Shown: positions 22,972 through 47,122 of the stretch, piece by piece
Numbering within the stretch: position 1 is the stretch's first letter
How the letters are laid out: every line of letters begins with the position of its first letter
Virus record (IMG/VR): IMGVR_UViG_3300021959_006017
Location: 124,001-188,000 of that record
DNA: 64,000 nucleotides
Strand: one strand, 5' to 3'
The notes under the pieces: generated by a model
The model's input: only the letters and a program-made list of their open reading frames with translations
Database searches by the model: none
Told to the model about the DNA's origin: nothing
Position numbers and translations under genes: made by a program

Positions 22972-23660
22972 GTACTCTTTGGTTATATGGTGATAGTTTT
23001 ACAGAGCCGTCAGGATTAGATTATGATCACGATTTATGGTGGGAACAACTTGCAGATAAGTTAGGAGTGACTAAGGTAGTTAATCAGGCACGAAGTGGGT
23101 TGCCTAATAGTTTCATTGCACTAAAACTAGGAGAAGACCTGCCTAAAATAAAACCTGATGATCATGTGTTTTTACAACTTACAGATCAAGACAGAGTATG
23201 GTTGTTTGAAAAAGAACCTCGCTTGAGCAACTTTAGAAACTTGTCAGAAAAAGATAATCATCTTACCAAAGCACAACAAAAAGCATTGAAAGAATATACA
23301 GTTCATTTCTTTAATCCAACACAAAACCAGGTTATTAGAGAACTAACAAAGTTTTTTGCTTTAGGAGCAACACGAGCTAACACAAGAGTATTAGATGCAT
23401 TTGACTTTATGGCAGGTGTTGACGGTACACTTGTAGAAGTTAGTATCAACGAATATGTGGGTGATACTGTTGCAGAACGACAACGTAATATGGACAAAGA
23501 TTGGCGGTTAGGTGAAGGCGAAAAACGGCCTAACCATTTATCCCCAAACAATCATGCTATATTAGCAGATAAAGTTTACAACTGGTTTACTAAGTCGAAC
23601 TATATGCTAGACTTAACCACAGATTTTGAAAAAAAGTTCTTGACAATACCAGCTAAGTAG
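22968..23660 (+). CDS. SGNH/GDSL-like hydrolase-fold protein
   Basis: LYGDSFT, N.A.SG..N and NHLS..NH..LA. Confidence 0.55.
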   Translation: MSTLWLYGDSFTEPSGLDYDHDLWWEQLADKLGVTKVVNQARSGLPNSFIALKLGEDLPKIKPDDHVFLQLTDQDRVWLFEKEPRLSNFRNLSEKDNHLTKAQQKALKEYTVHFFNPTQNQVIRELTKFFALGATRANTRVLDAFDFMAGVDGTLVEVSINEYVGDTVAERQRNMDKDWRLGEGEKRPNHLSPNNHAILADKVYNWFTKSNYMLDLTTDFEKKFLTIPAK

Positions 23661-24598: not shown

Positions 24599-24687
24599 GG
24601 AGGATGGGCAGGACGGTAATGCAGCGGATTGCTAATCCGTACTACGTGAATAGCGTAGAGTGGGTTCGACTCCCACATCCTCCGCCA
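24599..24687 (+). tRNA. tRNA-Ser(GCT)
   Basis: Acceptor GGAGGAT/ATCCTCC, anticodon arm GCGGA-TT-GCT-AA-TCCGT, long variable arm, GTTCGA, encoded CCA. Confidence 0.93.
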
Positions 24688-24690
24688 CTT

Positions 24691-24764
24691 GCGGCATTGG
24701 TGTAGTGGTAACATGCGAGCCTTCCAAGCTCTTGTCACCGGTTCGAATCCGGTATGCCGCTCCA
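24691..24764 (+). tRNA. tRNA-Gly(TCC)
   Basis: Acceptor GCGGCAT/ATGCCGC, loop CT-TCC-AA, U73, CCA. Confidence 0.93.
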
Positions 24765-24776
24765 TAAGGAGAAGAT

Positions 24777-24971
24777 ATGTTTTTTGGAATAGCTCTTATC
24801 GCAGGATTGTTCGTCTACGATAATCAAGAGTTTTTTAATACAGTAGAACAAAACATTGAGGATGGTTTTACTTGGGAGTATGTTGGTAAACAAGATCCAG
24901 CAGGACAACCAGCTGTAACCGTCCTTGACGGCCAAAACAACGAAGTCATTTATTTCAAAATGACTAAGTAA
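24777..24971 (+). CDS. Small membrane-anchored protein inside tRNA cluster 1
   Basis: AAGGAG RBS; hydrophobic N-terminus. Confidence 0.6.
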   Translation: MFFGIALIAGLFVYDNQEFFNTVEQNIEDGFTWEYVGKQDPAGQPAVTVLDGQNNEVIYFKMTK

Positions 24972-24976
24972 AATAC

Positions 24977-25052
24977 GCTGGTTTAGCTCAGTTGGTAGAG
25001 CAGGGGTTTTGTAAACCTCAGGTCGGGAGTTCGAGTCTCTCAACCAGCACCA
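24977..25052 (+). tRNA. tRNA-Thr(TGT)
   Basis: Acceptor GCTGGTT/AACCAGC, loop TT-TGT-AA, CCA. Confidence 0.93.
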
Positions 25053-25056
25053 TAAT

Positions 25057-25141
<85 letters not shown>

Positions 25142-25164: not shown

Positions 25165-25192
25165 AAATAGGGCCATAAGGCCCTATTTTTTT
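25165..25192 (+). terminator. Intrinsic terminator after tRNA cluster 1
   Basis: AAATAGGGCC-ATAA-GGCCCTATTT followed by further Ts. Confidence 0.85.
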
Positions 25193-25309: not shown

Positions 25310-25510
25310 ATGAGTAATCAAGGAAAAGTAAAATGGTTCGATGCCACTAAAGGTTTTGGATTTATCGCTACCGAAGACAAAGATATCTTCGTACACATTT
25401 CAGCAGTAGAAGCCGCAGGCTTACGACAGTTGAATGAAGGCGATACTGTACGGTTTGAAACACAGGATGGTCCAAAAGGTCCTTCTGCTATAAACTTAAC
25501 AGTCAACTAG
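25310..25510 (+). CDS. cspA: Cold-shock domain protein
   Basis: GKVKWF...KGFGFI and DIFVHISA. Confidence 0.95.
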   Translation: MSNQGKVKWFDATKGFGFIATEDKDIFVHISAVEAAGLRQLNEGDTVRFETQDGPKGPSAINLTVN

Positions 25511-25539: not shown

Positions 25540-25568
25540 TTGACAAACCGGAATAAATAAAGTATAGT
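25540..25568 (+). promoter_or_regulatory. Sigma70-like promoter of the leader-peptide/tRNA cluster 2 unit
   Basis: TTGACA (25540-25545)-N17-TATAGT (25563-25568); the spacer also contains a TAAATA. Confidence 0.75.
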
Positions 25569-25598
25569 ATATACATACTAAGAAATAAGGATTTTAAC

Positions 25599-25661
25599 AT
25601 GTTCAAGACTAACACAACAAATATTACTTGTTGGCCATCACGAAAGTGGGGTATGTCTTGA
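25599..25661 (+). CDS. Putative attenuator leader peptide MFKTNTTNITCWPSRKWGMS
   Basis: AAGGA RBS at 25587-25591; codons 11-14 are TGT TGG CCA TCA; the 3' end overlaps the antiterminator arm. Confidence 0.75.
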   Translation: MFKTNTTNITCWPSRKWGMS

Positions 25662-25726
25662 CGTGACTTTTTAAAAAGTTATTTTAGACAAAGCCCCCAA
25701 GCAGCAATGTAAGGGGGCTTTTTTTT
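25648..25726 (+). terminator. Attenuator: mutually exclusive antiterminator and intrinsic terminator
   Basis: Terminator AAGCCCCC (25691-25698)/GGGGGCTT (25713-25720) plus T run to 25726. Antiterminator GGGGT-A-TGTCT (25648-25658) pairs with AGACA-AA-GCCCC (25686-25697). Confidence 0.8.
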
Positions 25727-25796
25727 ATGGAGAAAGGAAAAATGACTGATAGTGAATATTGGCGATGGATGAAATCGCAAGTTGAATAAAGTTTTT

Positions 25797-25870
25797 GTCG
25801 GTGAAGTGTTATGGTAGCACGGCGGTCTCCAAAACCGCAAGCCGGGGTTCGACTCCCTGCACCGATGCCA
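25797..25870 (+). tRNA. tRNA-Trp(CCA)
   Basis: Acceptor GTCGGTG/CACCGAT, GCGGT-CT-CCA-AA-ACCGC, G73, CCA. Confidence 0.92.
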
Positions 25871-25948
25871 CGGAGTGTAGCTTAGTCTGGCTAAAGCGCC
25901 TGGTTTGGGACCAGGAGATCGTAGGTTCGAATCCTACCATTCCGACCA
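25871..25948 (+). tRNA. tRNA-Pro(TGG)
   Basis: Acceptor CGGAGTG/CATTCCG, anticodon loop with TGG in CCTGG-TT-TGG-GA-CCAGG, CCA; abuts tRNA-Trp with no spacer. Confidence 0.93.
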
Positions 25949-25950
25949 AT

Positions 25951-26040
25951 GGAGAGTTGGCAGAGCGGTTTAATGCACTGGTCTTGAAAACCAGCGAAGG
26001 TGAAAGCCTTCCGAGAGTTCGAATCTCTCACTCTCCGCCA
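25951..26040 (+). tRNA. tRNA-Ser(TGA)
   Basis: Acceptor GGAGAGT/ACTCTCC, CTGGT-CT-TGA-AA-ACCAG, long variable arm, CCA. Confidence 0.94.
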
Positions 26041-26044
26041 TTAT

Positions 26045-26119
26045 GTGAGCGTGGCAGAAAGGTTATGCAACGGATTGCAAATCCGTTTTATGCAAGTTCG
26101 AATCTTGTCGCTCACTCCA
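26045..26119 (+). tRNA. tRNA-Cys(GCA)
   Basis: Acceptor GTGAGCG/CGCTCAC, ACGGA-TT-GCA-AA-TCCGT, U73, CCA. Confidence 0.92.
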
Positions 26120-26126
26120 TTTTCGG

Positions 26127-26156
26127 TTGACATTTTCAAAATAGATGTTATATTAT
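26127..26156 (+). promoter_or_regulatory. Sigma70-like early promoter
   Basis: TTGACA followed by TG-T-TATATT/TATTAT; it marks the end of the four-tRNA unit. Confidence 0.6.
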
Positions 26157-38317: not shown

Positions 38318-41300
38318 ATGGCAAGACAAGATATTGATATTGGTGTATCAGGTAACGACGGAACCGGTGATAGTATTCGTGAATCCTTTCGTAAGGTAAA
38401 CGAAAACTTTCAAGAAATATATGCGGTTTTTGGGATCGGTGGACAGATTAGTTTTACTGATCTAAGTGACACTCCAGACACATATGAAGGTAACGAAAAT
38501 AAAGTTCCTTTAGTTAAGTCAGACGGTAGTGGTCTTAACTTACTTGAACTAGCATCTGACAACAGCCTAGACGGCTCACCTGATACTATTGGATTTGATT
38601 TTAGTGTAGATGGTAAAGTTATTCTTAAACAGCTTGTTTCAAGAGTTGCAAACGATCCGGAACCAACACTAGCTGGTCCACTAGACGCTGCTACACAGCC
38701 TATTGCAAACGTTACAGTTAGTCAAGCAGCAATTGATACTTTTAACTCTGTGCATGGTACAGACTTAACTATTAGTGACCTTGTTATTAACAAGAGTTTT
38801 GCAGACAGAAACTACCAAGAAAAGAAAGTTGCAGGCGGCGGATTACGTCTAGGTGATGAGCCTACAGATACTAGCGAGTATGTATTATCAACTGACTCTA
38901 TAAGTTTAGGAAACCTACAAGTTCCTGGTCATGGATTAAGTGATGCATATATTGGTGCTCCATTTTTCTTTAATAGTACAGGTACTGATCCATTTGGTGT
39001 TACTAGCGGAGGTACATATTACTTAGGTATTCCAGACGGTGACGAACTTTCATTATACGAAAGTGAAGAAGATGCACTTACAGGCACAGGCAGAATACTT
39101 CTAGCCGGTGGCTCAGGAACATTCACTATTACAGACGGTGCATATGACGACGAACTAGAAGGTTTTTGGTTATCAAACGTTGCTGTTCCACGAAAAAGCC
39201 TTGTAAGACGTCAAGGGGACTCAATGACAGGTCCTTTAAATCTATCAGATCATCCAGGCGAACTTGCTGGTAAAGGCTTGCCAAATGGTCCTGATGATTT
39301 ACAAGCAGCAACAAAACTTTATGTAGATAATGCTGCCGCTTCAAGTACAGTTAACTTGTATGTAAGTACAGCAGGTAGCGACAGTCAAGAGTTTACGCCA
39401 GACGGAAAAGAAGGACGTAACCCAGCATATGCATATAGAACTGTTAATGCTGCATGTCAAAAAGCAGAAGAAATAATTTTATCAGCTCCGCCTGAACCAG
39501 GTCCATATCAGCAAACAATGACTTTTGCCAATGGCGAAGACAATGGTACAGTTTTAACATCAGGTATTACTAGCACTATTGTCGGTCGTGCAGCAGCAAG
39601 AGCACTTATTTTAGAAAATAAAGAATGGGTAGCAAAAGAAGTTACCGGTTATATTGATGCTACATATCCAGAGTTTAGTGAAAGTTATGACACTGCTATA
39701 TGCGAAAGAGATGTTCAGCTTATTCTTGAAGCAGTAAGTTTAGATATTTTACTAGGTAATAACGCAAACTATCTATCACGTTACTCAGGACTACAATATT
39801 ATTCTAACGCAAGTGGACAGGTTGCTATTGGTGTTCAAAAAGCATACACTATTGCAGGTATTGAATATGCAAAAACACTAGTTAGAGATTATGTTCTTAC
39901 AAACACAGCACCTCCTACATCATATCAAAGTCGTGTAGAACAGTACATTGAGCCTGCTATTATTCCAGATAGCGCAGCAGACTCAGCTGCTGAAGCAAAG
40001 TTTGACATTGTTATAGATGTTATTAATAATGGTCCTCTTAATGCTCCTAGCATTGTTGACGGTTCAACAACTTATAAAATTAATATCTCTAATGGTAACA
40101 ACGGTTTTATAGATCAAGCTAATCCAGAAAATACAGACATTATTCCAGGTAAAGTTATTAGAGGTAAAAACTCTGGTGCTATTGGACGTATCATTGACTA
40201 CAAGCACGAGTCAGGTGATAGGGCTGTTAGTGTGCCAGAGACGGACGAAACTGAAGTTCAACTTCTTATTCCAAGAGAGTTTGAAGTAGGTGAAGAATTA
40301 GAATATGGAAACTATGTTGTAAGTACACAGATTAGTGTTAGAATCGAAAGCGGTATCTACGAAGAAGATTTACCTATTAGAGTTCCAGCTAACGTGTCTA
40401 TCAAAGGCGACGAGTTTAGACGAGTTATTATACGTCCGAAGGATCGTGTATCGCAATCACGTTGGGCAAATACATTCTTCTATCGTGATGCAGAGTTTGA
40501 TGGACTAGTATTAGGAAAGTCATCAATAGAAACGTTAAACTATGAACCTTCTATTGATCCACTAAGAACCGCAGGTACTTATACTATTTCTAATAATGAT
40601 TATACGTCTAGCGAACTTGGTAAAGATGCTGAGTTTGAAATAACAGTAAGTGCAAGTGGTGCTATTAACGATATTACTATAACAAATGAAGGTCAAGATT
40701 GGCAAGCAGGCGAAGTTATAACTGTTACTGATGCTGTGCTAGGCGGTGGCGGCGGTGCCGAATATGTATTCCGGGTCGCAACAGTACCAAATGGTATTAA
40801 GTACATTAACCCATTAACTGACGAAGTAGATGGTTACTTTGGTTATCATTACTTGCTTAAACCAGATAATGTAAAAAACATAGGCGCTGGTTATACAAAC
40901 GTTGGCAACTGGGATACAGCAGCTTTAGTCTTAGATGATAACAGAGAGTTTATACAAGAACAAGTTGTAAACTATGTAGAAACAACTTATCCTGCACTCA
41001 TCGGTTCTCCAAACTACAGCAGAACAAAATGTTCTCGAGATACAGGACTTATTGTTGATGCACTAGTTAAGGATCTACGCACCGGCGGCAACGAGTTTGC
41101 ACTAGAAGCACAAGGTGAATACTATGCAGGTGCAGTGAAAGCTGGTACAGAAACAGAAACTGTTGCAGGTATAGATCATATCTATACTATTGCAAATAAA
41201 CTTATTCTAGGTGAAGCACCGACTACACTTTATGGTCCAAGTGGAGCATCACCTATACGCCCAGGTAATAGTGGTGAAAACTTAGAATATGATTATGATT

Positions 41301-44300
41301 TATTCAATGGAAGTGCAGAACCCGATGAATGGGTTGCTGATAACGTATATCGTGTTGGTAATGTTGTCTACTATACATTTGCTGGCGTTGACAGATATTA
41401 TCAATGTAAGATCGAAAACCGCTCAGGCAATACTTTTGACTCAGCAGAAATCAATGCTTACTGGAGTGAAATCGACGGTATAGATACTGTTATTGATAAT
41501 CTAATAGATACTATTACTTTTGCATTTGATTCGAACTATAACCCACCGTTGAGAAACGACGAGATGGATGTGTTCTTAATGAATGATGCTACTATCTTAC
41601 GTAACATTACAGGACAAGGACACGGCGGCTTCCAAATGGTGCTTGACCCAGAAGGACAAATTCTAACTAAATCACCATACTGTCAGACTGGTACAGGTTT
41701 TGCAAAGAGTCTTAACAAACAAGTATTCCATGGAGGATTGTTTGTTGACGCATTTGTTGGTAACTCCGCAGTACAAGTTACAGAACGTGTAGATGGAGAT
41801 CCGTTTAGACTTAGAGTACAAAGTTTGGGTAGCCAATCTGATCCTCAAGGATTGTTTGTAAGACGTCCGCAAACACCTTGTGCGTTCTATATAGACGGCA
41901 GACGTTTCCAAGTTAATGCTGTAACACTTTATGATCCAGACTTTGGTACAGCAGAACTTATACTTGATAGAAGTTCTAATGATAGTAATGGATTCCAAGG
42001 TTTAACATCAGAACTTGCAACAGGGGTTGATTTAGATTCAATCGGCGATTTTAGTTTTAATGAAGAAAAATGCGAAAGAGATTCTAACTACATTGTTGAA
42101 GGTGTTGCACTTGACACAGTATTAGGTACTAACTACTTTGCTGTATACAATGGTCTTGCATATCATAGAGGAAATATAGCAGAAGTAGTTATTGATGACC
42201 AGCTTGCACAAACTACAGGTGCTTATGAAGCAGGTAGAGACAGAACACTACTTATTACAGAAGTTGCAGCAGACACTGATGTAGTTAACAGAGTTACAGC
42301 AGCTTATAATGAAGTAAATGATATAATCACTAACGGTCCTACATCTGCAGATGCAGTAACATTTACTGATACTGGTGTTACTGATAAAACCTATGCTAGA
42401 ACACTATTGCAAGCAAACCGAGATTTTATTGCAAGTGAAATCACAGACTTTATTACTGCAAACTATCCAAGTTTAACATACGACAGTGCAAAATGCGAAA
42501 GAGATGTAAAATACATTGTAGACGCTGTAAGTTTTGACATCCAATATCAAACTAACTTAGGTTCTAAACTAGCAGCAAGATCTTATTTTGACGATGGTGT
42601 TGCTGTAAAACCAACAGAACAAAGAGCTCCAACAGTTGCAGCATATCAAGAACTTGCAACTATAATGCAGCAGGTCGTCCAAGAAACATATGCAGGACAA
42701 ACTCTAACAGGTAATCCTGCAACAGCAACAGAAGGACTAGAAGCAGCAGGCTTAGTAGAAGTTATTTATGATGTTATTGATGAAGATTCATTAGTTAACT
42801 TACCTGCAGATATTACACCTGACAACACTTGGACAGATGTAAAGTATATTTCTGCTTATGAAGCTATATTAACTACACAAGCAACTATAGTAAATAAGAT
42901 AATCCAAAGCATAGATGCTCCATTACCTATTACACTACAAACAGCAGGTAACAGATCAATCCTAGGTAACGACTTTACACAGATTAACGACCAAGGATAC
43001 GGACTCGTTGCAGTCAACGGTGCTCTATCAGAAATGGTTAGTATGTTTACATACTATTGCTGGACATCATACTATGCTAAGAATGGTTCAGAGATTAGAT
43101 CACTGACAGGTTCTTCATGTTATGGTGAATACGGGCTTGTTGCTGAAGGTTCAGATCCAAATGAAATTCCAGACAGTGTATTACTTGCACAAGATATGGT
43201 TGAAAGTGCAAGAGTATTTGATGCTGATGTTGTACTTTATCTAACAGATAGGGTTAGACTACAAGCAGGAGATCAAATCGAACAGGTAACTTCTCTAGCA
43301 ACAGGTACGATTGCTGTAACTACAGCAGACTTAGATGATAGTACAGTTGAAGACGGTCCACAGACACCAGGAAGTAAAATAATATATCTAACTGGTGTAG
43401 AAGGAGCGTTTGATACAACAGGAGAACTACAGATTACAGGTCCTATAACAGGAGACTCAACTGTTACTGCACTCGGACCAAACAGTGTCCCTACAGATGT
43501 TGATTCAACAGGTTATGGTAATAACAAAGAAAACTTGTTCTGCTATGCATACGACTTTAAAGTAAATCCATCAAATAGATCAGAGTTTGATGTATATCAT
43601 CCAAGTGTTCCTACTCTTGCTAGATACGAAGCAGCAAGTTCTAACCTTGCAGGTCACACTGTAGGTGAGTACAAAGATGTTGGTGTAGGTGGTAATATTA
43701 CTCCGTTATCGAGCACATTTGCAGACGTAGGTGCTCTTGATGGATTGTTTGACGTACAAAAAACTATTGCTTATGGATATACTGCTACTATTTCAAACGG
43801 TGGCGAGGCATACACTGTAGGTGACCAATGGGTAGTAAGTGGTGCAGACTTAGGAGGTGTATCTCCTGATAATGATTGTACTATTACTGTTACTGAAGTA
43901 GACGAAGGAACTGGCTCAGGGCTTGGTGTTATATCAGAAGTTAGGCTGAGCGGCGATATTTGGCAAGAAACAAGCACTCCTATGTATGACGGTAGAGTTT
44001 TTAAACTTAACTTTAGTACAAGTGATGCACAGTTTAGTACAAGCGGGTTACTTGCAGATGTACCATGGGGTACACTTATCCAATATAGAAGAAACCAAGC
44101 ACATATTATAAGCGACTTAGCAAGACCAGATGTGTTAAGTATTCGTCCATCAACTGCTGTTGTATTTGATGAAAACCCAACACAGATTTATCGTTCAATC
44201 AGCTTCCTAAACAGTGATAGTATAGGAGTTGAACTACCACAAGGTACACTGCAAGCAGGATTTGATGAAGGTTATGATTATATCAGGATGCTTGTTAATA

Positions 44301-47122
44301 CTGCAAAAGCTCAAGAAACTGCACTTGCAGGATTAGGTACAACAAAAGGTAATACACCAGGCGATGTTGTAATAGCTGTTCAAGCAACACTAGATTCAAA
44401 CGAAATATTCCGTCTAAACAACAATGCTAGAACACCCGAAGCAAATAGACCTGTAGGCTGGACTCAATCATCTCTTCAGGAAGCTCCAATCTTTGTGTGG
44501 CAAGGTAAAAAACACTTCGTTTATAATGCTAGAGGTGTAGATGCTACAGATACAATCGTACCAATAGCAGAAGATAACGAATACATTATTGTTGATATTT
44601 CAGATATTGATACTATTAACCAAACAGATGCAACAGGCATTTACTCAACTCTTGTATTAGGTTCGGTTACAACTACATTACGTGCAGGTTTGAGAGCAGG
44701 AGCACCTGGTGATGTTACAGTTAATATCTCAACATGTCGTGCTACATCACATGACTTCCTTGATGTTGGAACTGGAGGTTTTAACGATTCAAACTATCCA
44801 AACGTAATCTTTGGTGAACCTGCAGATAAAAACTCTGCTAATGAAGTCGATGAACGTGGTAAAGGGCGTGTGTTCTATGTAAGTACAGACCAAAACGGTA
44901 TCTTTAGAGTTGGTAGATTCTTTAGCGTTGACCAAGGTACTGGTACAGTTACATTTGCTGCGAGTATTGCGCTGTCAGATGTTGACGGTCTAGGCTTTAA
45001 ACGTGGTGTTGTTGTTACTGAGTTTTCAACTGATACAGCAATGACAGATAACGCTGCTGATACAGTTCCAACAGAACTTGCTGTACGTGGGTACATTAAC
45101 AGACGTTTAGGATATGATGTAAACGGTAATCCTGTTTCCAATAAACTAGGACCAGGTGTGCTTGCTCCAAACGGTGCTGTTCCGATGACAGACGATTTGA
45201 ATGCGGCAGGTAATCAAGTTACAAACTTAGGAACACCTACTTCAGACTCTGATGCAGCAACTAAATCTTATGTAGATGACTTCTTAGGAAATCAAGATGA
45301 GATAAAAGATTTACGTTCAGTAACATATAATAGCGACCAGGTTGTTGAAGGACAACTTCTAGTTAAAACAGAGTATAAAAAACTTATTGTAGATGCAGGA
45401 TCAGTTACAGGCCCAGGAACATTTACAAGAGGACAAAGTATAAGTGGTTCAATAACAGGTGCTACAGGTACTATTGTTGACGTAATAGAAAGACAGGGTG
45501 TAGAAGGTGATATTCTTGAAATTATCTTTACTCCAGTAACAGGAGAGTTTAGTGATGGTAAGCCGATAGGATCATCACCAGATCCAGACGTTATTATTGT
45601 AACTGGTATTTGTCAAGCATTATGTATAGACGGTCCAGTTGATGAATGGGCAAATGGTGTATTTGATGCTGACAGTGATATTACTATAGGTACTAATAGA
45701 GAATCAAGTGATGGATTTGTAAGCGATCGATATACAACACTCAACTTCCAACTAAGCTCTGATAGTATTGTAAACAGTGATATTTCAGCTACAGCAGCTA
45801 TTGCACAAAGTAAGTTGAATATGAATGCTGCATCAACTAGAAATAGCCCTACTGGAATAAGTCAAAGTGATCTAGGCTTAGCAGCATTTGATAGTGATAT
45901 ATTTACTAATACAACTGGTTGGGTGACTATTGAAGACGGACAACTTTCTTTGAATAAGATACAGCGTATTCAAGACGGATATGTATTAGGTAACTGGAGC
46001 GGTGATAGTTCAGATAATGATATCGACGAACTACCATTCAGCACAGTTATCCAAGAAGGTGGCGGGCTTGCAGATGCAGACTTTGAACCAGCAAGTTTAG
46101 TTGCTGTTTCAGCTGATCCAGGAGAAGCATTAATAAAAACAGCTCCGGGAATATATGGTATAACAAACGTAACTAAAACTGGTGAAGTTAATAGTATTGT
46201 TAAAACTGATAATGCTGGTAGTATTCAAGTTAACTCGCTAATACTTGGAGGTGACCCAACTTACGAAATCTTAGGATTGGATACAACAACTATTGTGTTC
46301 AAAACACCTGCACAAGGTGAAATACTAAGAGCAGTAGGTACAACTGGTGCAGTTGCAACAGGCCCTGATGTTGAAATACCAGGATCAGTTAATATTGGAT
46401 CAACTGGTGTTACTGAAAGTACACTTCAAAATACTTCAAACTTTAACGGTGAAGCAAGTTTAGCAGTTGATTGGATATACAGTAGTTTTATTGAAGCAGC
46501 AGGCGAAAAAGGTTCTGCTTCAACAGGTGTTGCAATAGGTGCAAATACTGGTAAAACTGTTGCAGGCGAAGTAGGTATTGTTACAGCAGATACAGCAACA
46601 AGCTCTAGCTTTGTACCGTTTACATTTAGTTCAACAGGTGTATTACCTGATGTTGATGATACTTATGATATCGGTAGTGCAACACTAAAATATAAAGATG
46701 TATACGCTACAAGATTCCGTGGTACTGCTACCGAATCATATTACGCTGACTTGGCAGAAAACTACACAGCTGATGCAGACTATGAGCCAGGTACTGTACT
46801 AGTATTTGGCGGTGATGCAGAAGTTACGGTATGTTCAAGCAAAGGCGATCACAGAGTTGCTGGAGTTGTTACAACTAATCCAGCGCACTTAATGAATGCA
46901 GAACTTGAAGGCGAAAACGTTACTGGCATTGCACTACAAGGTCGTGTGCCTTGTAAGGTAATCGGCACTGTTGTAAAAGGAGATTTGCTTGTGTCAAGTG
47001 CTGTTCCAGGATATGCGATTGTTAATAATAATCCAGCAGTAGGAACAGTAATAGGTAAAGCACTAGAATCTAAAGATACTGACGAACGTGGCATTATTGA
47101 AGTAGTAGTAGGAAAGCACTAA
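38318..47122 (+). CDS. 2934-aa virion structural protein (tail fibre/baseplate-associated) with C-terminal chaperone-like domain
   Basis: N-terminal gp9/gp10-like I.IG..GNDGTGDS.R.F.K.N.NF; repeated Y...KC.RD...IV.A modules; D.ATK.YVD fibre motifs; C-terminal YADLAE.Y......GTV...AL.GRVPCKV.G...KGD.L. Confidence 0.75.
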   Translation: MARQDIDIGVSGNDGTGDSIRESFRKVNENFQEIYAVFGIGGQISFTDLSDTPDTYEGNENKVPLVKSDGSGLNLLELASDNSLDGSPDTIGFDFSVDGKVILKQLVSRVANDPEPTLAGPLDAATQPIANVTVSQAAIDTFNSVHGTDLTISDLVINKSFADRNYQEKKVAGGGLRLGDEPTDTSEYVLSTDSISLGNLQVPGHGLSDAYIGAPFFFNSTGTDPFGVTSGGTYYLGIPDGDELSLYESEEDALTGTGRILLAGGSGTFTITDGAYDDELEGFWLSNVAVPRKSLVRRQGDSMTGPLNLSDHPGELAGKGLPNGPDDLQAATKLYVDNAAASSTVNLYVSTAGSDSQEFTPDGKEGRNPAYAYRTVNAACQKAEEIILSAPPEPGPYQQTMTFANGEDNGTVLTSGITSTIVGRAAARALILENKEWVAKEVTGYIDATYPEFSESYDTAICERDVQLILEAVSLDILLGNNANYLSRYSGLQYYSNASGQVAIGVQKAYTIAGIEYAKTLVRDYVLTNTAPPTSYQSRVEQYIEPAIIPDSAADSAAEAKFDIVIDVINNGPLNAPSIVDGSTTYKINISNGNNGFIDQANPENTDIIPGKVIRGKNSGAIGRIIDYKHESGDRAVSVPETDETEVQLLIPREFEVGEELEYGNYVVSTQISVRIESGIYEEDLPIRVPANVSIKGDEFRRVIIRPKDRVSQSRWANTFFYRDAEFDGLVLGKSSIETLNYEPSIDPLRTAGTYTISNNDYTSSELGKDAEFEITVSASGAINDITITNEGQDWQAGEVITVTDAVLGGGGGAEYVFRVATVPNGIKYINPLTDEVDGYFGYHYLLKPDNVKNIGAGYTNVGNWDTAALVLDDNREFIQEQVVNYVETTYPALIGSPNYSRTKCSRDTGLIVDALVKDLRTGGNEFALEAQGEYYAGAVKAGTETETVAGIDHIYTIANKLILGEAPTTLYGPSGASPIRPGNSGENLEYDYDLFNGSAEPDEWVADNVYRVGNVVYYTFAGVDRYYQCKIENRSGNTFDSAEINAYWSEIDGIDTVIDNLIDTITFAFDSNYNPPLRNDEMDVFLMNDATILRNITGQGHGGFQMVLDPEGQILTKSPYCQTGTGFAKSLNKQVFHGGLFVDAFVGNSAVQVTERVDGDPFRLRVQSLGSQSDPQGLFVRRPQTPCAFYIDGRRFQVNAVTLYDPDFGTAELILDRSSNDSNGFQGLTSELATGVDLDSIGDFSFNEEKCERDSNYIVEGVALDTVLGTNYFAVYNGLAYHRGNIAEVVIDDQLAQTTGAYEAGRDRTLLITEVAADTDVVNRVTAAYNEVNDIITNGPTSADAVTFTDTGVTDKTYARTLLQANRDFIASEITDFITANYPSLTYDSAKCERDVKYIVDAVSFDIQYQTNLGSKLAARSYFDDGVAVKPTEQRAPTVAAYQELATIMQQVVQETYAGQTLTGNPATATEGLEAAGLVEVIYDVIDEDSLVNLPADITPDNTWTDVKYISAYEAILTTQATIVNKIIQSIDAPLPITLQTAGNRSILGNDFTQINDQGYGLVAVNGALSEMVSMFTYYCWTSYYAKNGSEIRSLTGSSCYGEYGLVAEGSDPNEIPDSVLLAQDMVESARVFDADVVLYLTDRVRLQAGDQIEQVTSLATGTIAVTTADLDDSTVEDGPQTPGSKIIYLTGVEGAFDTTGELQITGPITGDSTVTALGPNSVPTDVDSTGYGNNKENLFCYAYDFKVNPSNRSEFDVYHPSVPTLARYEAASSNLAGHTVGEYKDVGVGGNITPLSSTFADVGALDGLFDVQKTIAYGYTATISNGGEAYTVGDQWVVSGADLGGVSPDNDCTITVTEVDEGTGSGLGVISEVRLSGDIWQETSTPMYDGRVFKLNFSTSDAQFSTSGLLADVPWGTLIQYRRNQAHIISDLARPDVLSIRPSTAVVFDENPTQIYRSISFLNSDSIGVELPQGTLQAGFDEGYDYIRMLVNTAKAQETALAGLGTTKGNTPGDVVIAVQATLDSNEIFRLNNNARTPEANRPVGWTQSSLQEAPIFVWQGKKHFVYNARGVDATDTIVPIAEDNEYIIVDISDIDTINQTDATGIYSTLVLGSVTTTLRAGLRAGAPGDVTVNISTCRATSHDFLDVGTGGFNDSNYPNVIFGEPADKNSANEVDERGKGRVFYVSTDQNGIFRVGRFFSVDQGTGTVTFAASIALSDVDGLGFKRGVVVTEFSTDTAMTDNAADTVPTELAVRGYINRRLGYDVNGNPVSNKLGPGVLAPNGAVPMTDDLNAAGNQVTNLGTPTSDSDAATKSYVDDFLGNQDEIKDLRSVTYNSDQVVEGQLLVKTEYKKLIVDAGSVTGPGTFTRGQSISGSITGATGTIVDVIERQGVEGDILEIIFTPVTGEFSDGKPIGSSPDPDVIIVTGICQALCIDGPVDEWANGVFDADSDITIGTNRESSDGFVSDRYTTLNFQLSSDSIVNSDISATAAIAQSKLNMNAASTRNSPTGISQSDLGLAAFDSDIFTNTTGWVTIEDGQLSLNKIQRIQDGYVLGNWSGDSSDNDIDELPFSTVIQEGGGLADADFEPASLVAVSADPGEALIKTAPGIYGITNVTKTGEVNSIVKTDNAGSIQVNSLILGGDPTYEILGLDTTTIVFKTPAQGEILRAVGTTGAVATGPDVEIPGSVNIGSTGVTESTLQNTSNFNGEASLAVDWIYSSFIEAAGEKGSASTGVAIGANTGKTVAGEVGIVTADTATSSSFVPFTFSSTGVLPDVDDTYDIGSATLKYKDVYATRFRGTATESYYADLAENYTADADYEPGTVLVFGGDAEVTVCSSKGDHRVAGVVTTNPAHLMNAELEGENVTGIALQGRVPCKVIGTVVKGDLLVSSAVPGYAIVNNNPAVGTVIGKALESKDTDERGIIEVVVGKH

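Follow-up and report, generated by a model that had tools for sequence, protein, structure and literature searches.

A putative leader-peptide attenuator upstream of a tRNA gene cluster in an uncultured marine phage

We analyzed a 64,000-nt stretch of DNA (hereafter the window; positions 124,001 to 188,000 of IMG/VR record IMGVR_UViG_3300021959_006017) from an uncultured marine phage, in which a short open reading frame and an intrinsic terminator lie between a promoter and four tRNA genes. The features of the locus are as follows.

25540 to 25568 (+), sigma-70-type promoter, TTGACA-N17-TATAGT, with a transcript that probably starts near 25575
25587 to 25591 (+), Shine-Dalgarno sequence AAGGA, 7 nt before the start codon
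25598 to 25609 (+), region 1, the start codon and codons 2-4 (CATGT, CAAGAC), which pairs with the end of the ORF as the anti-antiterminator arm
25599 to 25661 (+), leader ORF of 20 codons plus TGA, encoding MFKTNTTNITCWPSRKWGMS
25629 to 25640 (+), control codons 11-14, TGT (Cys), TGG (Trp), CCA (Pro) and TCA (Ser), one for each downstream tRNA
25646 to 25665 (+), region 2, the last ORF codons, the stop codon and 4 nt beyond (GTGGGGTATGTCTTGACGTG), which can pair with region 1 and the Pro/Ser codons, or with region 3
25663 to 25682 (+), inner hairpin, GTGACTTT paired with AAAGTTAT, which caps the antiterminator
25686 to 25698 (+), region 3, AGACAAAGCCCCC, both the 3' arm of the antiterminator and the 5' arm of the terminator
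25690 to 25726 (+), intrinsic terminator, a 9-bp G+C-rich stem with an inner 3-bp helix, followed by U8
25727 to 25796 (+), 70-nt spacer with no promoter-like site
25797 to 25870 (+), tRNA-Trp (CCA)
25871 to 25948 (+), tRNA-Pro (TGG)
25951 to 26040 (+), tRNA-Ser (TGA)
26045 to 26119 (+), tRNA-Cys (GCA)
26127 to 26156 (+), next promoter, which drives the metallophosphoesterase gene and marks the end of the regulated unit

A sequence-only reading of this locus had described five elements, namely the promoter, the RBS and 20-codon ORF, a strong terminator, an alternative helix that takes the 5' arm of the terminator, and four tRNAs followed by a new promoter. The observation holds, as each of these elements was found in the sequence as described. 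Both promoters match the consensus at 11 of 12 positions, and the four tRNAs were called by both ARAGORN and Rfam. The terminator stem pairs 25690-25698 with 25713-25721 and folds at -19.2 kcal/mol; a simple terminator scan missed it because its loop is 14 nt, but folding finds it. In the alternative helix, GGGGT (25648-25652) pairs with GCCCC (25693-25697), TGTCT (25654-25658) with AGACA (25686-25690), and the inner stem GTGACTTT (25663-25670) with AAAGTTAT (25675-25682). This structure is the minimum-free-energy fold once the 3' arm of the terminator is left out and a ribosome is placed at the Trp codon, and at -19.7 kcal/mol it is about as stable as the terminator.

Among the 127,978 12-mers on both strands of the window, TGT-TGG-CCA-TCA is the only run of four adjacent triplets that covers the four cognate codon sets. 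With the codon frequencies of this phage, the expectation is 8e-7 per 4-codon window, or 1.4e-5 for the 17 windows of the ORF, which is lower than the chance of about 2e-4 estimated in the sequence-only reading. We also observed two features that this reading had missed. A further conserved helix, present in the minimum-free-energy fold, pairs the start codon and codons 2-4 (25598-25609) with the last codon, the stop codon and 4 nt beyond (25655-25665). Furthermore, the 70-nt spacer between the terminator and tRNA-Trp, which most relatives lack, carries a second micro-ORF (25727-25789) with a GGAG RBS (25742-25789, MTDSEYWRWMKSQVE), whose peptide core EYWR(W/Y)M is conserved in three other lineages.

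Absence of the ORF or of the codon/anticodon match from related phages had been put forward as grounds for rejecting the interpretation; the comparison with relatives came out in its favour. The ORF, terminator and competing helix are conserved as one module in at least 124 distinct phage contigs from IMG/VR and JGI metagenomes, and the module is common in coastal and estuarine metagenomes. In 25 aligned relatives, TTGAC and the -10 TA..T of the promoter are invariant or nearly so. The ORF is kept open and in frame at six different lengths (17, 18, 19, 20, 21 and 22 codons) in 117-124 relatives, with an ATG or GTG start and always the same stop position. An RBS match lies 5-10 nt before the start in 117 of 124 relatives, with a mode of 7 nt. 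The Trp codon is invariant in the family, and tRNA-Trp is the first tRNA after the leader in essentially every relative. Region 2 is nearly invariant in relatives and occurs once in the window, and the inner hairpin is conserved in the alignments.

A separate promoter between 25727 and 25796 had likewise been named in advance as an outcome that would count against attenuation. No promoter-like site was found in this interval of the window. In most relatives, the U-tract of the terminator abuts tRNA-Trp with a gap of 0-2 nt, so the tRNAs can only be made by read-through, which removes this objection for the family. Furthermore, a strong terminator directly upstream is specific to Trp-led clusters, as it was found for 136 of 139 of them compared to 5 of 185 other tRNA clusters in the same loci.

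To examine covariation of the helices, we first computed an RNAalifold consensus on a MAFFT alignment, which recovered the terminator and two small hairpins but not the long-range helices. We therefore compared the duplex energies of each module's own arms with those of mixed arms. Own arms paired better for the start:stop helix (-11.9 vs -9.2 kcal/mol) and for the terminator (-15.0 vs -11.6 kcal/mol), and 0 of 1000 permutations reached the observed values in either case. The alignment also revealed 26 sequences with a double compensatory change at one pair of the terminator. ATG starts always go with TGA and Y-R-U-G after the stop, whereas GTG starts always go with TAA and C-R-C-G. In 114 relatives, the mean region 2:3 duplex energy is -12.2 kcal/mol. 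In contrast, covariation of the antiterminator could not be shown because both arms are nearly invariant (own and mixed arms, -12.15 and -11.99 kcal/mol).

Folding with part of the leader blocked, a check that had been suggested along with the original observation, reproduced the trp-type geometry in silico. In the window, the antiterminator is predicted with the ribosome A site at codons 2-13, its probability drops to 0.14 at codon 14, and it is 0 beyond. In 114 modules, P(antiterminator) is 0.97 with the A site at Trp, then 0.69, 0.47 and 0.14 at Trp+1, +2 and +3, and about 0 from Trp+4. Thus, stalling up to the Trp codon is predicted to free the antiterminator, and a ribosome further along masks it. 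With the full transcript at equilibrium the terminator always wins, so the model depends on kinetics. Without a ribosome, the antiterminator is predicted (mean P 0.88 across the family, 0.51 in the window), suggesting that an untranslated leader reads through rather than terminates, unlike trp superattenuation.

We next asked whether leader codons co-vary with the downstream tRNA set, as the sequence-only reading had proposed to test in related genomes. Of the non-Trp, non-Met tRNAs in these clusters, 152 of 173 have a cognate in-frame codon in their own leader, compared to 118.7 +/- 4.0 for permuted clusters (z 8.3). Without Cys and Pro, the match is 50 of 70 against 26.5 (z 6.7), and at the amino-acid level it is 160 of 173 (z 7.1). 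Frames +1 and +2 give z from -0.3 to -3.0, and nucleotide-level hitch-hiking was rejected because out-of-frame triplets show no positive association. Random windows of the same length from long ORFs in the same loci match only 52 of 163 tRNAs, with z about 0, against 145 of 163 for the leader, and codon-usage hitch-hiking was therefore rejected as an explanation. Phylogenetically independent pairs, on a tree that rests on about 200 nt, give 28.5 in the same direction as the tRNA change, 3.3 opposite and 41.2 unchanged (sign test p = 2e-5). Codons matched to cluster tRNAs lie from Trp-10 to Trp+4, mostly Trp-7 to Trp+4, and never later, the same limit as the structural permissive window.

Single-codon switches track tRNA swaps between relatives (L numbers denote individual loci): Cys to Gly (L082 and L192), Pro to Ser (L022 and L023, L187 and L004), a CGT codon with Arg(ACG) (L196, L094), GAA with Glu (L094), TAT with Tyr (L008, L275), TTT with Phe (L218), GAT with Asp (L236), and ATA with Ile(TAT) (L082, L022). 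However, the Gly cases use GGT, which a UCC anticodon reads only by extended wobble. The match is one-directional and not strictly one-to-one, and the exact four-for-four correspondence of the window is the tidy end of a looser rule in which Trp is the only invariant partner. Leaders keep Cys, Pro or Ser codons in 29, 49 and 39 loci, respectively, whose cluster lacks that tRNA, and these codons persist where tRNA-Trp alone follows. Conversely, about 11% of cluster tRNAs have no leader codon; Arg(GCG) never does, and most Glu and both Ala tRNAs lack one. The Pro codons also form an RNA hairpin with the GGGG of region 2, hence part of their conservation may be structural.

Together, these observations support the earlier interpretation of the locus as a ribosome-mediated transcription attenuator, with the corrections given above, and we consider this reading probable (roughly 0.72). 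In this view, RNA polymerase transcribes the 20-codon leader from the promoter at 25540 and a ribosome follows it. If the ribosome reaches the last codons or the stop, its footprint would cover region 2, region 3 would pair with region 4, the terminator would form, and a leader RNA of about 150 nt would be released. If the ribosome is held at or before the Cys-Trp-Pro(-Ser) codons, or if no ribosome loads, region 2 would be free to pair with region 3, and the polymerase would run on into tRNA-Trp, Pro, Ser and Cys. The slow-decoding codons in the leader would be those read by the tRNAs behind it, so that output of the cluster would be tied to how well those codons are being decoded, and the phage tRNAs would shut off their own synthesis once they accumulate.

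The elements, their conservation, the covariation of helices, the conserved position of the permissive window and the frame-specific co-variation between codons and tRNAs rest directly on our analyses, whereas we infer that termination is decided kinetically, that stalling actually occurs at single codons, and what physiological trigger matters. All evidence is computational, and the dependence of read-through on leader translation and on the supply of cognate charged tRNA was not measured. Classical attenuators use runs of the same codon, whereas here each amino acid usually appears once or twice, and sensitivity to any one tRNA may therefore be low. The purpose proposed in the sequence-only reading, a response to starvation or a counter-measure against anticodon nucleases, is likewise inference; the trigger (starvation, host tRNA loss or feedback) is untested, and no expression or host data could be obtained. 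Four salt-marsh metatranscriptome runs hold only a related csp gene and tRNAs of other organisms. One low-depth contig joins the leader to tRNA-Trp in a relative, but it is not usable as expression evidence, DNA carry-over cannot be excluded, and metatranscriptome contigs gave no usable coverage of the leader.

Other explanations appear less likely. The element could be a general translation-capacity gate that terminates only when a closely coupled ribosome translates the whole leader, so that any global slowdown, such as host shut-off, ribosome shortage or late infection, gives read-through and the particular codons matter little. The predicted antitermination of the untranslated leader, the equal effect of stalling at any codon from 2 to the Trp codon in the model, the occurrence of each amino acid only once or twice, and the retention of the same Cys-Trp-Pro core whatever the cluster holds are consistent with this unlikely alternative. 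However, it does not predict the frame-specific and locus-specific co-variation of leader codons with tRNA identity, nor an invariant Trp codon paired with a universal tRNA-Trp. Still less likely, the promoter, ORF and terminator could form an independent gene for a 20-aa peptide or a roughly 150-nt sRNA, the tRNAs being made by constitutive leakage through the terminator. The unit has the look of an sRNA or small-protein gene, the terminated RNA folds very stably (-44.7 kcal/mol, z -4.3), its ends are strongly conserved at the nucleotide level, and attenuator leader peptides and RNAs can act in trans, for example peTrpL (PMC7298713). Nevertheless, such a gene gives no reason for the tie to tRNA-Trp in essentially every case, for a terminator that abuts the tRNA, for central codons that track the tRNA set, or for the complementarity of region 2 to the terminator arm, although a trans function could exist in addition to attenuation.

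We regard two further possibilities as remote. Nascent-peptide arrest by the conserved W-P-P or W-C-P-P peptide, in response to a small molecule or to EF-P status as in TnaC- or SecM-type arrest peptides, would leave no part for tRNA supply. Trp is invariant and followed by Pro or Pro-Pro in nearly all leaders, and Pro-Pro motifs are slow to translate. However, the window itself has W-P-S and other leaders have W-P-L, W-C-L-S or W-C-G-C, flanking residues vary freely and follow tRNA content, and the conserved C-terminal residues are explained by RNA pairing. The least likely alternative is constitutive transcription of the tRNAs from an internal promoter, TTGACG-N16-TATTTT at 25658-25685, or from promoter elements overlapping the terminator, in which case the leader and terminator would only end upstream transcription. 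This site was listed by the promoter scan with 9 of 12 matches, and TTGAC in GTCTTGAC is conserved in the lineages with an ATG start. Yet the match is weak, its predicted start falls inside the 5' arm of the terminator so that its transcripts would still contain the terminator, lineages with a GTG start have TTAAC there, and terminator loops are not conserved, hence no -10 element is maintained.

A bolder reading, about as likely as not, is that these modules are a phage-borne family of programmable multi-codon attenuators. The leader would be a short list of the codons served by the tRNA cargo behind it, rewritten by single-codon changes whenever tRNA genes are gained, lost or swapped. The phage would then measure, codon by codon, whether the infected cell can still decode, for example after host tRNA decay or cleavage by anticodon nucleases, and would top up exactly those tRNAs with built-in negative feedback. 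This would be the first attenuator known to regulate tRNA genes themselves, and a natural OR-gate sensor of tRNA availability.

Why phages carry tRNA genes is a long-standing question, and proposed answers include codon-usage compensation, replacement of degraded host tRNAs and escape from anticodon nucleases. A cis-regulator that reads the very codons served by the cargo tRNAs would show that at least one phage lineage treats part of its tRNA set as an on-demand resource, since its other tRNA clusters lack the device. Read-through of a 150-nt leader would report which tRNA becomes limiting during infection, and the element offers a compact natural part for building sensors of tRNA availability. 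It would extend leader-peptide attenuation in two ways, as the regulated product is an RNA of the translation machinery and several different single control codons replace a run of one. The evolutionary record, in which single-codon edits track tRNA swaps, is an unusually clear case of co-evolution between a regulator and its cargo.

The tryptophan operon leader of Enterobacteria (trpL, Rfam RF00513) and the his, thr, leu, ilv and pheA leader-peptide attenuators share with the module a promoter-proximal short ORF with an RBS and internal control codons, four RNA segments that form mutually exclusive 1:2, 2:3 and 3:4 helices, and an intrinsic terminator before the regulated genes. The last reliable control codon lies about 16 nt before region 2, as in trp, and a ribosome at the stop codon masks region 2. 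However, in these systems the regulated genes encode biosynthetic enzymes rather than tRNAs, and the control codons form a run of one amino acid instead of one each of several; the present element, moreover, is in a phage. There is no sequence homology, as the Trp_leader model scores 25.1 bits at 25623-25726 against a gathering score of 41, with most of the score coming from the terminator. The Phe, His and Thr leaders score 16-23 bits, and the sub-threshold Rfam hits, to the Trp, Phe and His leaders, ctRNA and PyrR, are driven by the terminator; the element belongs to no known RNA family. The pheST leader (pheM) of E. coli also controls part of the decoding apparatus for the amino acid of its control codons, forming a feedback loop on translation capacity, but it regulates an aminoacyl-tRNA synthetase, has one amino-acid specificity and is chromosomal. 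This system was not included in our tests.

T-box riboswitches also decide between termination and antitermination according to the status of specific tRNAs, and their specifier changes with the regulated gene. They bind uncharged tRNA directly through a specifier codon and the T-box loop, without a ribosome or an ORF, and no T-box hit appeared in Rfam scans of the locus at E-value thresholds of 1 and 10. The proline-codon leaders mgtL and mgtP of Salmonella and arrest peptides such as TnaC are short leader ORFs in which Pro or Trp positions decide the downstream RNA structure or Rho access. They respond to Mg2+/proline or free tryptophan, regulate transporters or tryptophanase, and show no co-variation with tRNA genes.

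Large lytic phages such as T4 and T5 likewise carry clusters of closely packed tRNA genes among early genes with strong sigma-70 promoters. Our literature searches, which did not cover subscription-only sources, found no report of a leader-peptide attenuator in front of such clusters, nor of an attenuator in front of tRNA genes. A scan of 185,579 bacterial and archaeal genomes gave 11 hits, all of which were chance matches without the leader context. The ligase of this phage is at most 37% identical to that of any cultured phage, and PHROG scans of ten large proteins mostly returned 'unknown function', which did not identify the phage lineage or its host. A DNA search of 50,697 GenBank phage records matched only the tRNAs, indicating that no cultured phage among them carries the module. 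In that search, the Pro and Ser tRNAs of the window were about 80% identical to the T4 Pro-Ser pair.

All of the elements named in the sequence-only reading are present in the sequence, so that its observation holds. They are as follows.

25540-25568, plus strand: promoter TTGACA-N17-TATAGT, matching the consensus at 11 of 12 positions.
25587-25591: ribosome-binding site AAGGA, 7 nt before the ATG at 25599.
25599-25661: ORF of 20 codons encoding MFKTNTTNITCWPSRKWGMS.
25690-25698 paired with 25713-25721: 9-bp G+C-rich terminator stem with an inner 3-bp helix and a U8 tract.
25797-26119: tRNA-Trp(CCA), Pro(TGG), Ser(TGA) and Cys(GCA), called by both ARAGORN and Rfam.
26127, plus strand: the next promoter.

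A simple terminator scan missed the terminator because its loop is 14 nt, but folding recovered it at -19.2 kcal/mol. The alternative helix is exactly as had been described: GGGGT pairs with GCCCC, TGTCT with AGACA, and the inner stem GTGACTTT with AAAGTTAT, at -19.7 kcal/mol, so that the two structures are about equally stable. Furthermore, TGT-TGG-CCA-TCA is the only one of the 127,978 12-mers in the window, on both strands, whose four triplets cover the four cognate codon sets. With the codon usage of this phage, the chance of such an occurrence is 1.4e-5 for an ORF of this size.

No cultured phage shares the region beyond the tRNAs themselves, and the window is identical to part of a 236,751-bp IMG/VR contig. 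A very large ORF of 2,934 aa (38318-47122, plus strand) sits in a block of large genes, two neighbours of which have weak PHROG hits to virion, tail-fibre, baseplate or protease families. The phage has no close cultured relative. To collect relatives, we used two approaches that are blind to the control codons and to the tRNA set. The phosphoesterase gene located downstream gave 80 loci, and a motif at the 3' end of the leader was searched in IMG/VR and in JGI/ENA metagenomes. Together, these searches gave 226 parsed modules, of which 114-124 are distinct, from marine, estuarine and salt-marsh samples (individual loci are designated L followed by a number below). In contrast, a scan of 185,579 bacterial and archaeal genomes returned only chance matches, and the module therefore looks restricted to phages.

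Conservation of the leader ORF in relatives had been proposed beforehand as a test of the attenuator, and alignments of the relatives showed that the whole unit is kept: the -35 and -10 elements, the RBS, an ATG or GTG start, an ORF of 17-22 codons that always ends at the same stop, the region GGGG-UAUGUCUU-stop, an inner hairpin, and the terminator. By strict criteria, 117 of 124 distinct modules have an RBS, a start codon and an in-frame ORF, while the other seven also have an open frame but with a more distant or weaker RBS.

Expression of the tRNAs from a separate promoter located after the terminator had been singled out in advance as an outcome that would count against attenuation. Two findings address this possibility. 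In most relatives, the U-tract is 0-2 nt from the first base of tRNA-Trp, and the 70-nt spacer of the window is a lineage-specific insert. Furthermore, within the same loci, a strong terminator directly upstream was found at 136 of 139 Trp-led clusters but at only 5 of 185 other tRNA cluster starts. Therefore, these tRNAs can only be expressed by reading through a terminator, and this arrangement is specific to this cluster. In the window itself, two further clusters, Ser(GCT)-Gly(TCC) and Thr(TGT)-Leu(TAG) (24599-25141, plus strand), have no leader or upstream terminator and are followed by a bidirectional terminator at 25165-25188; in this view, only the Trp-led cluster is gated.

The interval between the terminator and tRNA-Trp contains additional elements. 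In the window, a second micro-ORF with a GGAG RBS (25727-25789, plus strand) encodes MEKGK-MTDSEYWRWMKSQVE, with two Trp codons. Its core EYWR(W/Y)M is conserved at the peptide level in three other lineages (L194, L236 and L255), and it could be a small protein or a second translational checkpoint. In L041 (3680-3770) and about 30 other relatives, the same position as the 70-nt spacer is occupied by a 77-96 nt element with a 10-bp closing stem (ACTACACTAC with GTAGTGTAGT) and three internal hairpins. This is a cloverleaf-like predicted fold at -25.8 kcal/mol (z -2.85), which ARAGORN does not call as a tRNA and which has no Rfam hit.

In the full leader, the minimum-free-energy fold closes the ORF on itself. 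CATGT (25598-25602) pairs with ACGTG (25661-25665), and CAAGAC (25604-25609) pairs with GTCTTG (25655-25660), while a local hairpin pairs the Pro/Ser codons with the GGGG of region 2 (the last ORF codons, the stop codon and 4 nt beyond) and the terminator follows. The start:stop helix covaries, as each module's own arms pair at -11.9 kcal/mol, a value reached by 0 of 1000 permutations, compared to -9.2 kcal/mol for mixed arms. All 86 ATG leaders have TGA (or TAG) followed by Y-R-U-G, and all 28 GTG leaders have TAA followed by C-R-C-G. The terminator arms covary as well, whereas the antiterminator arms are too conserved to show covariation.

To test, as had been suggested, how blocking part of the leader would alter its folding, we modelled a ribosome as a stretch forced to stay unpaired, from 12 nt before to 14 nt after the first base of the P-site codon, and folded the transcript as it exists just before the 3' arm of the terminator is made. 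In the window, the antiterminator has a probability of 0.89-1.00 with the A site at codons 2-13, 0.14 at codon 14, and 0 from codon 15 to the stop. Across 114 distinct modules, the mean probability is 0.97 at the invariant Trp codon, 0.69, 0.47 and 0.14 at Trp+1 to Trp+3, respectively, and about 0 beyond. The Trp codon therefore sits at the last reliably permissive position, about 16 nt before region 2, which is the spacing of the E. coli trp leader. We observed two differences from trp. With the whole transcript at equilibrium the terminator always wins, so that the decision must be kinetic, and an untranslated leader is predicted to antiterminate, with a mean probability of 0.88 across the family and 0.51 in the window. 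In this model, efficient translation of the entire leader is what would switch the cluster off.

The clusters behind the leader are very fluid. Trp may stand alone or be followed by Cys, by Pro, by Pro-Ser-Cys, by Pro-Tyr-Cys, by Gln-Cys, by Cys-Met-Ile, by Pro-Cys-Glu-Arg, and by many other combinations. tRNA-Trp comes first in 99 of 100 distinct combinations, and the Trp codon is invariant in the leader. The one apparent 'Cys only' case, L136 (minus strand), contains a tRNA-Trp(CCA)-like sequence missed by ARAGORN in the 76 nt between the terminator and tRNA-Cys. In L300, the order is Cys then Trp.

To examine whether the leader codons track the other tRNAs, which had been proposed as a check in related phages, we applied conservative wobble rules. 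Our results show that 152 of 173 tRNAs (non-Trp, non-Met) have a cognate codon in their own leader, compared to 118.7 +/- 4.0 when clusters are permuted among leaders (z 8.3). When Cys and Pro were also left out, 50 of 70 matched compared to 26.5 +/- 3.5 (z 6.7). In contrast, triplets in the other two frames of the same sequences gave z of -1.9 and -0.3, and -3.0 and -2.8. Likewise, windows of the same length drawn at random from long ORFs of the same loci matched 52 of 163, with z about 0, whereas the leaders of those loci matched 145 of 163. These last two controls exclude nucleotide hitch-hiking and shared codon usage as explanations.

Furthermore, we built a tree from the promoter, the post-ORF region and tRNA-Trp, leaving out the leader codons. 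Phylogenetically independent pairs that differ in a cluster tRNA showed the leader codon changing the same way 28.5 times, the opposite way 3.3 times, and not at all 41.2 times (sign test, p = 2e-5). The matched codons lie from Trp-10 to Trp+4, mostly Trp-7 to Trp+4, and never further on, which coincides with the predicted structural permissive window. Individual switches are easy to read. ATA-ATA-TGT-TGG goes with Pro-Cys-Ser-Ile, and ATA-ATA-GGT-TGG with Pro-Gly-Ser-Met-Ile. CCA-CCA becomes CCA-TCA when tRNA-Ser(TGA) is present, in two separate pairs. CGT appears with Arg(ACG), GAA with Glu, TAT with Tyr, TTT with Phe and GAT with Asp.

The rule runs in one direction and is imperfect. Every cluster tRNA is represented in the leader in 83 of 100 loci, and in 12 of 19 for four-tRNA clusters. 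Conversely, leaders keep Cys, Pro or Ser codons in 29, 49 and 39 loci, respectively, whose cluster lacks that tRNA, and the same leader can precede different clusters. Arg(GCG) is never represented in the leader, and most Glu and both Ala tRNAs are not. The Gly cases use GGT, and the Pro codons also serve as an RNA arm. Therefore, the perfect, contiguous four-for-four match emphasized by the sequence-only reading is the clean end of a statistical rule, not a law.

The interpretation proposed from the sequence alone, a leader-peptide attenuator, is thus supported, with that qualification. We consider the best explanation to be a leader-peptide attenuator that gates a Trp-led tRNA cluster (probability of about 0.7). 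The layout of the unit, its conservation and the co-variation of codons with tRNAs were observed, whereas the role of the element as a feedback sensor for decoding of the codons read by those tRNAs is inferred. What triggers the switch in nature is not addressed by any data here, and candidates are amino-acid starvation, loss of host tRNAs during infection, anticodon nucleases, or simple homeostasis of the phage tRNAs. Four alternatives appear unlikely without being dismissed. A non-specific translation-capacity gate is the most serious, as it is compatible with the folding model but not with the codon co-variation. An independent small gene with a leaky terminator, a nascent-peptide arrest element and an internal promoter retain still smaller likelihoods.

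Mechanistically, this would be a trp/his-type attenuator, yet it is not a member of any Rfam leader family, as Trp_leader scores 25.1 bits against a threshold of 41. Its closest parallels in logic are the pheST leader and the T-box. Full-text literature searches, from which most subscription journals were absent so that prior work is not excluded, found no description of an attenuator in front of tRNA genes, in phages or in cells.

Four salt-marsh metatranscriptomes contain only a related csp gene and tRNAs from other organisms, and one low-depth contig links the leader of a relative to tRNA-Trp, which neither supports nor refutes the model. In the window, a cold-shock-protein-like gene of 66 aa (25310-25510, plus strand) lies directly upstream of the leader, with no terminator before the leader promoter, so that its transcripts should also run into the attenuator. 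A csp 90-99% identical to this gene is abundant in salt-marsh metatranscriptomes but continues into different flanking sequence. In many relatives (L003, L008, L011, L016, L018, L020 and L072), the place of the csp gene is taken by a conserved ORF of about 30 aa with two CxxC motifs (MEDKYCIDR..FHCPHCG..) that ends inside the -35 element of the leader promoter. Finally, the window carries a string of near-consensus TTGACA-N17-TATAAT promoters at 23640, 25540, 26127 and 26697 (plus strand), each in front of a short transcription unit, respectively a 150-aa protein, the leader and tRNAs, a metallophosphoesterase, and an ATP-dependent DNA ligase, an organization typical of an early region that relies on host sigma-70.
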